Source of the DNA: Blepharisma stoltei ATCC 30299 | Lineage: Eukaryota; Protista; Ciliophora | Direction: 5' to 3' | Length of the DNA stretch: 64,000 nt | Assembly: GCA_965603825.1 (NCBI GenBank) | Contig: CBFDEM010000053.1 | Location: 992,001 to 1,056,000 of the forward strand | Shown here: positions 19,772 to 25,170 of the stretch, piece after piece | Layout: each line of letters starts with the position of its first letter | Numbering within the stretch: the stretch's first letter is position 1 | Notes under the pieces: model-generated | Told to the model about the DNA's origin: nothing | Seen by the model: the letters and a program-made list of their open reading frames with translations, nothing else | Databases searched by the model: none | Position numbers and translations under genes: made by a program

Positions 19772-21037
19772 ATGGCTATAATGAAGGATAAACTAAGGCC
19801 TAAAGAATCAGACAAAAATTTTTCTCTTCTGACCAAGTCTTTCTCAAAACATCTAATTGCAGGTGCAGGGGATAAGCCAAAAGACGCAATCGTCCAACCT
19901 TTGGCAAGCAAAATTACTGAGACCTTGCCAGTCGAGCAAAAAGCAACCAAAACAGAATCTACCTGCTCCGCATCTAATGACTTAAAGCCTCATCCACAAA
20001 TCACTCCGCCCCTTGAAAATGAAAAATCGCCACTTGCCATCTCACAGCTTATTCGTGAAGGCTGATCAAAATTTCAAGATTCTCAATTTTCCCAAGGTGC
20101 AGAAATTCTTGATATAGCATTGAAAAAATCGGAGCCTGGGAGCCTGATATATTTCGACATTTTATATTTGATTGGGCGGTGCCATATGAATTTTAATTTA
20201 GAATCGGCATCAAATATTTTCCAGCAGCTCCTTGAGAGAAACACTGAGGAGCCAATTTATTGAAATGGGTTTGGGGACATATTAGGCAAATTAAAAAAGT
20301 ATTATGAAGCATTTCAATGCTTTTTGAAAGTAATAACTTTGGATAAACACTTTATTGAAGCATGAATTAACATTGGAATCATTTATGATTTGTGCCAGAA
20401 GCCACAAAATGCTGATACATCATATCAGGTAGCTTTTAAAATTAAGTCAAAAAATCAGAAAATCAGATTAAATGTGGAGAAAATGATGAAATCTCGACAT
20501 CTTCAGCTTGAATTTGTGCAACCTGATATTATTGATCCTACAAAAAGTCCATTTACCAAGTCCCCAACTGCTCCTGCTCATAATACTCTATTAGCAGAAG
20601 TCGATCCAAAGATAGAAAGTAAGCAGAAAAGAATTAAAACCGATAGGCCAAATGAGCTAGTTAAACCTGAAGAAATAATCCAAAGCACTCCACAAGAGTC
20701 AATTAAAATGGAAGATTCTATAAATATTATAAGACCTCAATTATTGGTCCCAGCTGGAACTTCAATTGAAAATATGAGCCCAATCCCAATAACAGCCGCA
20801 CCCTTAGGTTCCAGAATTCAGATGCCTTCAATTGCCCAATTTCACGCAGGCTTTCTTTCATTCTTGAACTGGTACTCATCCGAAATTCAACGTAGGAAGC
20901 AACATCCAAAAAATTCTCCAAAACAATCAGAAGAAACAATCAAAAATGAAGAGCCTGCAAACATGCTTCTTAATCTTACTCCAGCAAAAAGGCAAAAGAC
21001 CACCAAAGGCAATGGCAAAAAGAAACGAAAAATATAA
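19772..21037 (+). CDS. TPR-repeat protein (Cyc8/Ssn6-like repeats) with basic NLS-like tail
   Basis: Through TGAs: LYLIGRCH, Y-W-NGFG..YEAFQCF.KV..LD and A-W-INIGIIY. C-terminus KKKRKI. Confidence 0.75.
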
Positions 21038-21056
21038 TAGCTTGTTAATTTAAAAT

Positions 21057-23459
21057 ATGGAGTCAAAACTCAAAAAAATAGCTCCAGCTGTTGGGGCATT
21101 TTCTGTGTTTATTTACATATACCCAGAGAAGCTCTATACTATTTTTTGGTTTTGTGGCGGGGTTTGATTCACGATTTTATTACAACTGGCAGTTTATTAT
21201 TTATTTTTATTGAAAGAGCCTAGAGAAAAGTTAGAAGAGCCGAAAACTGATAGGAAAATTAATTTGAGAAAAGATTCAGCAGAAAGAATTGAAATGAGAA
21301 GGGAGCAGCACGATGCAACTCCAAGAAGAAGCTTAAAAAGAAGAGAAACAATGGTACCTTGCCTATGCAAAGGATCTGAATTTAATTCTCTTGCAAGTGG
21401 GTCTGATTCTACTATTACTGAGCTTGTTCAGTATATGAAAGATTTAGTCCAAATCGAAAAAGCATATGGGCAAGCTCTATCAAAAATCGGCGAAATTTCA
21501 TTCCTCACCAAAGTTATCAGCAAACAAAATAAATCACAACTGTTTGGAAATTTAAAAGTCACTTTAAATCAAATTGGAATCAACCATACAGATGAAGCTA
21601 AATATCTATCAGATAGCTTGATTGAACATTTATTAGTTGTCGAGAAAGAAATGAAATCTAAGCATAAGGAGCTTGCGCAAAAACTCAAAAATTTCTATGG
21701 GAATGTTGAAGCTGCCGCAAATGATCTCCAAAAAGTTCAAACAAAGCTTACTGAAACTCAAAATGCCCAACAAAAAGCACAAAATGAATATAAAGATATC
21801 AAAAACATAGGATTTGAAGTCATAGCCAAAAGAGAAATGAAATTAAAACTGATAAGCAGCGAGCTATCTACTCTTCAGCACACACTCCAACAAATGAAAG
21901 ACAAACTAAATGAAGAAATCTATAAATATCTCCCCAAAGCAAAAGAAGTTTTTGAAGAGTTCAAAGTTCTTCGACATCAAAAAGCATCTCAATATATTTC
22001 ATGTGTAAAAAGCTGAATAAATAGCCTAGAAAGCTGCATGAGCAATAATCTGCAGGTTTGGCATAAAAATAATGATGAGTCAATGTATACAGAAGGGGAT
22101 GAAATCCTTGATATCGATGAAGAAGTCAAAGCTAATGAAAGCTCTCTCAATTGGAATAAAAGGCAGAGGTCATTAGAAATGAAAGAGGAAAAATTCGGGA
22201 TAAAAGACATCAAAGACATCTGGGCTAAAGCTGTAAATAGAATTACAGCAGTTAATCAGCAGGAAATTGAAGATTTAGATAAGAAAGCAAAAGAAGTCAA
22301 AAACTACTTTGAAGATATAACCGCCTTTATCAAAAACTTGATAAGTGCAGAAAGAAATTACGCCAGTGAGTTAAATCTCATTATTGAGGCCTGGCATAAT
22401 TTAGATGAGCTAGGAATTGGCGATGAATGAAGGAGCACTGCGAAGGACTTTGAGTTTGTTACAGAAGCCATTGAAAGGCATTCAGAAGAAGTTGAAGGGG
22501 TTAGGGAAGAGCTTAATAACTTTGAAGTCTATTTGTCTGATTTTTATGAGCTATTAGATAAAGCAAAAGGAACTCCAGAACTTTTGCAGAAGGTTAAGGA
22601 AAAATTATCAGAGCTGATAATACTAAAAGACAGGCTAGATGAAACTTGCAAAGCCAAGCTTACTATTGCACTTGGCAATAAGCTAAAAGAATGCCACAAA
22701 TTTTTATCTTCTTTGCATCACATGGACGATGCTGAAGATATTGAAGTGTTCGGACAATTTTCTGATAAGGCAAAAAACCATAGAGAGCAATGCCCATATT
22801 TTATTCAGGAAATTGTCCCAGAGTCTGGAAGTGAAAATACAACAGTAACTCGGATCCAAACTGGCTCAGCAGAATCTTCGGTGTGGCTTAACGAGTTGCT
22901 TTCTACTTATATATCTGAGTGAATTGATGCTCCCAGATTCCAAAAGTGGATTTGTCGAAGGCTTAAAAAGGTCTACAACAAAGACAGGCCTGAAATTATT
23001 AGTGAAATCAACGTCAGAAATGTTGAATTAGGTGGTCAATCACCTATTGTCAGTGAGTTTACTCCACTGTCAAAGGACTCTGAGCTAGACTTTTACTATG
23101 AGTTTGATCTGGTCTTTGAAGGCCAAGTTATTATTAACATAGATTTTCAAGTTCTTTTGGGTCCCGCCAAAATCCCAATTTATGTACGAATAATTTTGCA
23201 CTCATTCAATGGAAGGGTGATGCTATTTTATACTCCTTCAGACAAGGGAATGTCATGGTACTCTTTGACTGCAAAACCTGATCTTAGAATTACTTTGGAG
23301 CCAGTGCTTGGAAAAGCAAATAAAGTGGAACTGAAAAAATTCCCACAATTAATTGCATTTTTGATGAAAGGAGTTGATAAAAAGCTTGAAAAGTTTATTT
23401 TCCCCAATACAAGGTCTATTAAAATTCCTAAAGGGAAAAAACCTATATTTAGACTATAA
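21057..23459 (+). CDS. N-terminal TM + F-BAR-like coiled coils + C-terminal SMP lipid-transfer domain (800 aa)
   Basis: One frame from ATG 21057 to TAA 23459 via four TGAs. FCH-like YMKDLVQIEKAYGQALSKI and FIKNLISAERNYASEL; SMP motifs ESSVWLN..RPEIISEI.V..VELG..SP, WYS..KPDL and FIFPN. Confidence 0.8.
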
Positions 23460-23637
23460 ATTAAGATATGTTAGAATTAGAGCTGAAAAATTAAAACCAG
23501 TTAAATCAAGCTGGTCTTAAAGAATTTTAATCATAATTTATGCTCGATCCTTGGATTTTACTGAAATTGAAGTGAGCTAGTTTCCATATAAATATTGATT
23601 TTTTGGGCATTTTCTAAACTCATAACAAATATCTAAT

Positions 23638-25170
23638 ATGGAAAATAGACAAACTCTTAGGATCAACATAAAGACTATTTCTGGCCAAGTCAAAGATTTG
23701 GAAGTCACTAACGATGTATTTTCTAAGTAGATCTTAGTCTCAGACTTAAAAGTAGAAATATCCAAGCATTTTGAAGCTCCCGTCCCCAGACAAAGATTGA
23801 TATATCAAGCCAGACTTTTAAAAGATACCCAAAGTCTTAGTCACTATGTAAAAGAAAGTGGCATTACAATTCATATGCTCCTTCAATCTCTTGAAGGCTC
23901 AAGCTCACAAGATACTTCTTCCCAGGCTCCTCAACCTAATCCCAATCAGTCTAATGAAAATCAATTTAGGTCTTCTAATCCTTTTGAATCACTTGGAGAT
24001 GCTTCAAATTTTATTCCAAACTTCCACTATTCTAATCCCATGGTACTTGGCTTCTTAAACTTAAACATTCCAAACTTAGTAAATAGGGCAAGAGAAAATG
24101 GCATTAACCCGCCTGAAGAAAACACTGCCTTGCTTACAGAAATTCTTCAGTATTACAATTTATTGCTTTTCCATATTTCAGCTTTAAGTAGGATTGTCCC
24201 AGTATTACAGAATTTGATCACTTATCAATACTCCATCACCTTTCTAGGCGCAGCGCAGTTAAGCACTATAAATCCTCCAGCAATATTTACGAATCTGGCA
24301 CATTCAGCACTAATGATGATAGAGGGACTCAGAGCTATATTATGCAGAATTGAAAACAGAGAAGCTGGCTCTTTTCTAGACTCATTCAATGGATTTCAAA
24401 TATTTGCAAATTCATTATCAATTCTTTTGTCTACAATCGAGAATTTTTCTAATCCAGATAACATGCATGAAATACTTGGCCCGAACTATGATATTAAATT
24501 AGATTCTATCATATCGATTTTTGAAGGATTTACTGGAGAAAGCAGACCCGAGTGACTACGGACTCTTTCAAATCTAAGTATTGGTGAAGCTTTTGAGAGC
24601 TTTTTTAGTAATTGGAGTGCTTTTAATTGCATATTTCCAGTGCTGAAGTCTTGGCTATCTAGTATGGTTTCAACAGGCGAGATAAATCTTAATGAAGAAT
24701 TTTTTGAAGAAAATGATCATTTTCCTCCTATCCCTGAAAGATTTAATCCTAAAATGAAATCAGGGATTAATTTGGACCAAGAATTAAAGAATTCTACTAA
24801 CTTTTGGGTTAAAAAGACATCGAATCACATTCTTAATTACCAAGGAACAAATGGAATGGCTGAATTGAAAAGAAATATATGCTGTTACTGTGGTAACTTA
24901 GTGGATATAGCAGTTGAAGCTCTGCATGGAAATGTATCAGATGGTAAAGACTTGATGGTAAGCACACTATTGGAAATCATCGTGGATATATTTCCAGGAA
25001 CTCTCACAAGCCAAGTAAGAAATTCATTGACAAACACACTGAATATTTCATTTACAAACTTTCATGATTGCTATTTGAAATATAAAAATGAAAATAGTAG
25101 TAATATCAATAGTATGATATCAGTTCCAGAAAACTTTTCTATAGGTAGTGAAATTTCTGATGAAGAGTAA
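23638..25170 (+). CDS. ubiquitin-like domain protein (BAG6-like N-terminus)
   Basis: INIKTISG..VSDLKVEI..RQRLIYQARLLKD..TIHM. One 15-nt intron and TGA at 24553. Confidence 0.75.
23716..23730 (+). other. 15-nt intron GTATTTTCTAAGTAG
   Basis: Removal restores a complete Ubl domain. Confidence 0.88.

Follow-up and report, generated by a model that had tools for sequence, protein, structure and literature searches.

The window analysed here is a stretch of 64,000 nucleotides from the ciliate Blepharisma stoltei ATCC 30299 (assembly GCA_965603825.1, contig CBFDEM010000053.1, positions 992,001 to 1,056,000 of the forward strand), and coordinates given below count from its first letter unless stated otherwise. 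It contains, between an upstream and a downstream neighbour, a gene whose 800-residue product is predicted to join a hydrophobic N-terminal anchor, an F-BAR domain, a second, shorter BAR-like helical bundle, and a C-terminal SMP domain. SMP proteins are lipid carriers that work at contact sites between membranes, and each known SMP family is, to our knowledge, targeted by a C2, PH, PDZ/C1, or partner-binding module. Known F-BAR proteins are soluble and have the F-BAR domain paired with SH3, muHD, RhoGAP, kinase, or WW domains. The sequence of the protein and its automatic domain matches are public; its combination of a membrane anchor, an F-BAR domain, and an SMP domain appears to be undescribed.

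Reading frame and genetic code

The frame at 21057–23459 of the forward strand comprises 801 codons, in which the only internal stops are four TGA triplets and the terminal TAA lies at 23457. The start was placed at the ATG at 21057, because an in-frame TAA stands two codons upstream of it (21051–21053) and the N-terminus is conserved in relatives. Under the standard code the frame is split into five pieces, and the standard-code listing of open reading frames held four fragments, with the 36-codon N-terminal piece omitted. In the initial sequence-only reading, these four fragments and an unlisted N-terminus were joined into one frame by reading TGA as Trp. This joining was borne out by the frame itself, by single contigs that span it, and by a protein in NCBI/UniRef (P0001) that is identical to the 800-residue translation with TGA as Trp. 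The gene has therefore already been predicted in public annotation, and Pfam matches to PF00611 (FCH) and PF26547 (PDZD8_N) have been precomputed automatically for P0001; the description of the gene as hidden did not survive. P0001 served as the query for the full-length searches described below.

As judged from alignments, TGA is a Trp codon in this gene, because three of the four sites (codons 320, 458, and 622) align with conserved Trp residues of orthologues and a paralogue swaps TGA for TGG, or the reverse, at the same columns. The gene has 12 Trp codons (4 TGA and 8 TGG). At the column of codon 320, Trp is found in 5 of the 8 aligned core relatives and in the near-identical P0158, with Leu, Tyr, and Phe in P0004, P0016, and P0017, respectively. 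The orthologous genes on metagenome contigs contain zero in-frame stops. The paralogue (810 residues; 43% identity) lies on the same contig, about 847 kb before the present gene (G000:C53:165941-168373; L003:1942-4374, forward strand). It has four in-frame TGA codons of its own, partly at Trp columns where the present gene has TGG, and four Trp columns show TGA/TGG swaps between the two genes, twice in each direction. The assembly (41.46 Mb in 64 contigs, about 66% A+T) matches the published somatic genome of Bl. stoltei ATCC 30299, which was reported to have a size of 41 Mbp, 66% AT, UGA coding for Trp, tiny introns, and short untranslated regions (PMC9942806).

The locus is contained in four sequencing runs of one study, the RNA nature of which was only guessed. 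The runs behave as RNA rather than DNA, because their contigs stop at gene boundaries, the depth between genes is zero, and the depth jumps from gene to gene. Thus the contig of the upstream gene, whose stop lies at 21037, ends at 21055, two bases before the ATG; the depth is zero in every run at 23516–23783; and adjacent genes are more than 10-fold apart in depth. Three contigs (X1, X2, and X3) each cover the gene in one piece without joints, insertions, or deletions, their own lengths being equal to the parts placed on the window. Instead of ending at an internal TGA, an outcome that the sequence-only reading had named as refuting it, these RNA-like contigs pass all four TGA sites. No intron inside the open reading frame was detected in the contigs of three runs, and an intron within it was rejected for the want of any joint. 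In one run a second allele was found, with six differences, all of them synonymous and at third positions. The locus is one intron-less gene with RNA-like coverage from end to end. What weighs against this description is that the RNA origin of the runs is a guess, and that contigs do not define the 5' end; those found here start 7–17 bases after the ATG.

The split of the frame under the standard code would also be seen if the long open reading frame were an artefact, the TGA codons being true stops that separate several short genes or interrupt a pseudogene. We give this explanation virtually no weight, in view of the reciprocal codon swaps between the paralogues, the three TGA sites that align with conserved Trp in orthologues free of in-frame stops, the single RNA-like contigs across all four sites, the purely synonymous allelic differences, and the published genetic code of the matching genome. 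The positions of the four TGA codons and of the features described in the next section are collected in Table 1.

Table 1. Features of the gene and its predicted product; coordinates refer to the window.
Feature	Coordinates	Strand	Basis
Complete coding sequence, 800 residues and TAA stop	21057..23459	+	Frame and stop check; identical P0001; single contigs
RNA-like contigs covering the gene in one piece (X1, 21064-23474; X2, 21072-23478; X3, 21074-23474)	21064..23478	+	
First hydrophobic segment (residues 8-22), leading into a conserved turn that contains Pro	21078..21122	+	Hydropathy; N-terminal profile
Second hydrophobic segment (residues 26-54); putative hairpin or two-helix membrane anchor together with the first	21132..21218	+	Hydropathy; profile
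In-frame TGA, codon 37, within the second hydrophobic helix; Trp not kept at this column in relatives	21165..21167	+	
Arg/Lys/Glu-rich linker, residues 55-97, poorly conserved	21219..21347	+	Alignment; low pLDDT in the first model residues
F-BAR domain, residues 98-346: short helix, FCH helix, two helices of ~85 residues	21348..22094	+	Pfam; profile; predicted fold
Cys-x-Cys motif (C102, C104), N-terminal edge of the F-BAR domain	21360..21368	+	Family alignment
In-frame TGA, codon 320	22014..22016	+	Alignment with relatives
Acidic linker between the helical modules, residues 347-392, of variable length, predicted disordered	22095..22232	+	
Shorter BAR-like three-helix bundle, residues 393-565, starting with an FCH-like helix	22233..22751	+	Pfam; hhalign; profile; predicted fold
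In-frame TGA, codon 458; Trp in the paralogue and several orthologues	22428..22430	+	
His-x3-Cys-Pro motif (H575, C579, P580), between module 2 and the SMP domain	22779..22796	+	Family alignment
SMP (TULIP) domain, predicted lipid transfer, residues 606-790, with a short basic tail behind it	22872..23426	+	Pfam; profile; predicted fold
In-frame TGA, codon 622, within the first helix of the SMP domain; Trp invariant in the 12-sequence family alignment; TGG in the paralogue	22920..22922	+	

Domain architecture of the encoded protein

The C-terminal region is firmly assigned, by sequence profile and structural model, to an SMP domain of the Mmm1/Nvj2/PDZD8 type, for which a lipid-transfer role is predicted. 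Pfam MMM1 matched the full protein with 22.6 bits (cut-off, 21.9); when the SMP piece by itself was compared with PDB sequences, only noise came back. The profile of a 46-row family alignment matched Mmm1 (E-value, 1.2e-19), Mdm12 (1.3e-9), and E-Syt2 (4.6e-6). The structural model of residues 598–800, which rests on the same alignment, has a predicted local distance difference test score (pLDDT) of 91.6 and a predicted template-modelling score (pTM) of 0.83, and begins with two helices, continues with a long twisted sheet, and closes with a helix at the C-terminus. In a Foldseek search with this model, the best match was Mmm1 (E-value, 2.8e-9; template-modelling (TM) score, 0.68–0.70), followed by Mdm12, E-Syt2 (8.6e-4), TMEM24, and other TULIP proteins. 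Conservation along the protein is highest in the SMP domain and lower in the helical region.

At the opposite end of the protein, hydropathy analysis gave hydrophobic windows solely at residues 8–22 and 26–54 (21078–21218). The profile of the N-terminal region matched orthologues with E-values of 1e-17 to 1e-26, and the second hydrophobic segment can be made out even in P0012, P0021, and P0030, which are divergent members. Conservation falls off beyond it, in a flexible basic linker, residues 51–100 sharing 24% identity with the paralogue.

The region between the anchor and the SMP domain is predicted to be largely helical and falls into two modules, each of which contains one of the FCH-like helices that had been picked out from the sequence (residues 125–143 and 424–442). 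Pfam FCH matched the whole protein with a summed score of 31.2 bits (cut-off, 27.8). FCH was the best, although sub-threshold, Pfam match for the pieces between TGA codons (E-values, 0.0014 for module 1 and 0.0041 for module 2) and for the two modules of the paralogue (0.0041 and 0.00075, respectively). A module 1 profile built from 11 family members matched solved F-BAR domains of GAS7 (3.4e-7), Drosophila syndapin (4.8e-7), Fes (8.1e-6), and CIP4 (3.7e-5), and also PACSIN1 (~1e-3), the F-BAR matches spanning about 200 columns, or nearly the full length.

An AlphaFold2 model of residues 92–604, built on a 19-row family alignment, has a mean pLDDT of 79.4 and a pTM of 0.69. In module 1 of this model, a short helix precedes helices of 28, 83, and 88 residues (model residues 28–55, 73–155, and 162–249, respectively). 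Almost all of the top 50 Foldseek matches for the helical model were F-BAR domains, with target-normalised TM scores of mostly 0.55–0.66 for the better-fitting chains. In an exhaustive VIA search of 48,161 solved chains, the first 13 were all F-BARs (Hof1, PSTPIP1, Imp2, CIP4, Rgd1, Cdc15, GAS7 (twice), GMIP, FCHo2, syndapin, PACSIN2, and srGAP2; Z-scores, 11.2–13.5; 227–261 residues aligned). Their alignments span model residues 7–258, corresponding to protein residues 98–349, and beneath them ranked only hairpins of 70–160 residues.

Certain results tell against the assignment of module 1. Taken singly, the two FCH stretches fall below the Pfam cut-off (19.4 and 17.8 bits); the matches of the helical model in Foldseek have weak E-values (no better than 0.015); and a Z-score of ~13 can arise by chance for unrelated long helical bundles, according to the caution given with the tool itself. 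Nevertheless, because the sequence profile, the full-domain coverage, and the uniform top matches agree, module 1 is, on the evidence of sequence and predicted fold, a bona fide F-BAR domain. A generic coiled coil, which the sequence-only reading had named as an outcome that would refute its proposal, was rejected for the middle region, since the full-domain matches are exclusively F-BARs: the top 13 of the 48,161 chains by fold and, by profile, the solved domains at 3.4e-7 to 3.7e-5.

Module 1 has a positive net charge in eight and a net charge of zero in one of the nine aligned relatives, and a basic Lys-x-Glu-Met-Lys-x-Lys motif is conserved at the start of its last long helix. The linker that follows is poorly conserved and has a pLDDT below 50 at model residues 252–290.

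After this disordered stretch of 40 residues, the AlphaFold2 model continues with module 2, which has helices of 64, 49, and 45 residues. Module 2 appears to be a shorter, acidic, BAR-like bundle, for which the support from sequence and model is weaker than for module 1. Its Pfam FCH match is sub-threshold both here and in the paralogue, with the E-values given above. Comparison of module 2 with module 1 by hhalign gave a probability of 86–89% and E-values of 2e-6 to 6e-6, with a confident part of only ~75 columns that covers the FCH helix and the beginning of the one after it. The module 2 profile matched GAS7 (5.3e-5) and PACSIN1 (1e-3), both of which were outscored by a chemoreceptor coiled coil. 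In a VIA search, residues 393–565 aligned with the BAR domain of arfaptin (Z-score, 10.3; root-mean-squared deviation, 2.9 Å over 156 residues) and the F-BAR domain of Syp1 (Z-score, 9.8; 170 residues), both Z-scores being within the range of unrelated helical bundles. The net charge of module 2 is negative (−4 to −16) in all nine aligned relatives. In the family member P0012, Pfam FCH reached 55 bits from both modules in two stretches, which supports an internal duplication. From its sequence, module 2 looks like a degenerate internal duplicate of module 1.

Two short motifs, Cys-x-Cys at the N-terminal edge of the F-BAR domain and His-x3-Cys-Pro between module 2 and the SMP domain, always co-occur across 17 family members: both are present in 13 of the 13 core database members with an intact N-terminus, as well as in the paralogue, and both are absent from 4 divergent members. 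Shared ancestry alone could explain this co-occurrence. Taken with the two-module model, whose pTM is 0.69, the pairing of the motifs suggests that the modules pack against each other, perhaps with a metal site in common. More speculatively, such a candidate site, made up of the two motifs, may clamp the bundles so that they form a single unit.

Most of the architecture proposed in the sequence-only reading is thus retained. The two short hydrophobic segments at the N-terminus coincide with the only hydropathy windows, and the SMP domain is complete (residues 606–790, with the profile match to Mmm1 at 1.2e-19 and a fold TM score of 0.70). The proposed tandem of F-BAR-like modules stands for module 1, by profile and fold; what follows it is shorter, acidic, and BAR-like, with weaker support.

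Relatives, known systems and neighbouring genes

A profile search with the SMP part among 1.84 billion representative sequences yielded 249 proteins at E-values of 0.001 or below. The best matches are 720–800 residues long and carry the SMP domain at the extreme C-terminus, with the anchor and modules 1 and 2 recognisable; PF26547 (PDZD8_N) is precomputed on the orthologues as well. A further search with the SMP region added five more relatives, none of them named. The complete layout, a survey of which had been suggested along with the original proposal, recurs in the paralogue (the same anchor, F-BAR, BAR-like, and SMP order) and in about a dozen metagenomic proteins from freshwater and other sources, encoded on gene-dense contigs. 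The architecture also recurs in Paramecium pentaurelia CAD8159001.1, annotated only as 'SMP-LTD domain-containing protein', which retains module 1 (E-value, 1.5e-13) and the SMP domain, and in the EukProt protein P0012 (1,427 residues), where the anchor is combined with two FCH-positive modules, an SMP domain, and a tail of considerable length.

In SMP relatives that are more distant, PH or PH and RhoGEF are present, and never FCH. When 46 SMP domains were placed in an unrooted maximum-likelihood tree, the present family was split from the PH–SMP group by a branch with support of 100/98. The nearest ESM Atlas clusters are those of Nvj2 (the nearest, labelled 'Nvj2 protein'), Mmm1, and PDZD8; FCH is not carried by any of the large ESM Atlas clusters in the neighbourhood of this protein, and a shape search of the same resource with the 513-residue helical model gave TM scores of only 0.17–0.32. 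Within the Bl. stoltei genome, a search with the SMP profile and Pfam MMM1 found nothing beyond the two paralogous loci among the best-scoring candidates, which is weak evidence, and Pfam SMP_LBD had no match in the genome, a blank that is also weak evidence. FCH-matching loci number at least 13, seven of them above the Pfam cut-off.

Among characterised proteins, the closest likeness is to Nvj2/Tex2, which consists of N-terminal hydrophobic helices, a PH domain, and a C-terminal SMP domain (PMC11320393). The present protein likewise has two N-terminal hydrophobic helices, a putative membrane-binding module, and a C-terminal MMM1-type SMP domain; unlike Nvj2/Tex2, the position of PH is held by the F-BAR domain and the BAR-like bundle, which together take up about 470 residues. 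No Pfam PH match was found on P0001 or nine orthologues, whereas the next-closest SMP relatives of the family bear PH domains, as Nvj2/Tex2 do. Mmm1, the best solved SMP match by both profile and fold, shares the N-terminal membrane anchor, but its SMP domain comes straight after the anchor and has Mdm12, Mdm34, and Mdm10 as partners, whereas ~550 residues separate the two elements here. Extended synaptotagmins/tricalbins resemble the protein in having a hydrophobic hairpin anchor, an SMP domain (with a significant match to E-Syt2), and a lipid-binding module for a second membrane; they differ in that here the SMP domain comes last, so that the order is reversed, and there is no C2 domain (no Pfam C2 match on this protein). 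PDZD8 shares the N-terminal anchor and the PF26547 (PDZD8_N) match, but has PDZ and C1 domains, which are lacking here, and an SMP domain that adjoins the anchor (PMC11320393). With GAS7, PACSIN/syndapin, CIP4/FBP17, Fes, FCHo/Syp1, Hof1/Cdc15/Imp2, and PSTPIP1, the protein shares F-BAR profile homology and the full-length predicted fold; unlike these F-BAR proteins, it is predicted to be membrane-anchored, has a second, acidic BAR-like bundle, and is fused to an SMP domain.

The earlier statement that no characterised protein combines SMP and F-BAR domains agrees with our literature search, which found, among the papers it covered, no work linking an SMP domain with F-BAR, nor SMP-LTD with FCH. 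A match of the architecture to an already characterised family, the third outcome named in the sequence-only reading as refuting it, likewise did not turn up. The SMP families treated in a 2024 review are E-Syt/Tcb, ERMES, TMEM24, PDZD8, and Tex2/Nvj2, none of which has a BAR module (PMC11320393).

Several observations concern the surroundings of the gene. On the upstream side, the spacer and the untranslated regions of both genes are packed into about 20 bases (21038–21063). Short alternative contigs with 4–6 differences each occur in some runs at 22625–22685 and 20809–20863; the six differences within the gene resemble a second allele in the culture, and the other four fall in the upstream gene. 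The downstream gene (23638–25170, forward strand) reads as one protein of 506 residues once a 15-base GT...AG intron (23716–23730), which contains an in-frame TAG, is removed; by eye, its N-terminus looks ubiquitin-like. The zero-depth stretch at 23516–23783 takes in the 3' intergenic region and the beginning of this gene, so that the depth is zero over its first ~150–250 bases, rising to 200–760 further along; a read filter may have removed conserved sequence there.

Proposed function and alternatives

Based on this comparison, the protein probably acts, in our judgement, as an anchored lipid-transfer tether that is targeted by membrane curvature, with the BAR modules replacing the PH domain of Nvj2/Tex2. 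The hydrophobic pair would anchor the protein in the donor membrane, most likely that of the endoplasmic reticulum (ER), as in characterised SMP proteins. The BAR unit would stand in for the PH domain of Nvj2/Tex2 or the C2 domains of extended synaptotagmins, and would bind a second, curved and anionic membrane, selecting it by curvature and charge, or possibly curved ER in cis. In addition, it would keep anchor and SMP domain about 20 nm apart, and the latter would shuttle glycerolipids between the two bilayers. Ciliates have unusually elaborate curved membranes, including the alveoli, the spongiome of the contractile vacuole, and phagosomes.

Two features sit uneasily with such a tether: the SMP domain lies far from the anchor, unlike that of E-Syt, Mmm1, and PDZD8, and the net charge of module 1 is only +3 over 249 residues in this protein (0 to +16 in eight others). 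The small charge, together with the acidic nature of module 2 in all relatives, the lower conservation of the helical region than of the SMP domain, and the reported presence of Tex2 on ER tubules (PMC11320393), would fit an explanation in which the BAR modules are a rigid dimerising spacer or bind curved ER tubules in cis, and set the reach or the oligomeric state of the SMP domain in the manner of the coiled coils of other contact-site proteins. Against it, the fold and the sequence signature of an F-BAR domain have been kept all the way from heterotrichs to Paramecium and P0012, which speaks for a role beyond that of a spacer; the module 1 charge is positive or zero in all nine aligned relatives and reaches +16; and a basic motif is conserved at the start of the last long helix. 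We regard this explanation as credible but unlikely. Since the sequence does not name the anchoring organelle, the anchor might alternatively reside outside the ER, for instance in the alveolar sacs, the contractile-vacuole system, or the membrane of phagosomes, and the protein might be an F-BAR scaffold that shapes membranes, with the SMP domain acting mainly as a lipid sensor or dimerisation module. The finding of at least 13 FCH-like loci, that is, an expansion of F-BAR functions in this ciliate, is in keeping with this alternative, whereas all characterised SMP proteins covered in the 2024 review are ER-resident lipid-transfer proteins (PMC11320393) and the SMP domain is the part of the present protein that is conserved best. 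On these grounds we consider a non-ER scaffold improbable.

The curvature-targeted tether may be elaborated further, albeit as a doubtful proposal to which we attach little confidence. The basic F-BAR domain and the acidic bundle might fold back on each other and be fastened by a metal clamp between the Cys-x-Cys and His-x3-Cys motifs, giving an asymmetric BAR unit within a single chain that holds the SMP domain at curved contact sites; the family might then represent the main or only SMP lipid-transfer system of heterotrichs.

If the tether reading is correct, lipid transfer would be linked to membrane curvature within a single polypeptide, and the protein would belong to the few F-BAR proteins with a membrane anchor. 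The homologue in Paramecium, an organism with established RNA interference and tagging, makes the family tractable. As the two paralogues are the only SMP loci detected among the best-scoring candidates in the genome, they may carry much of the SMP-type lipid traffic of Bl. stoltei.

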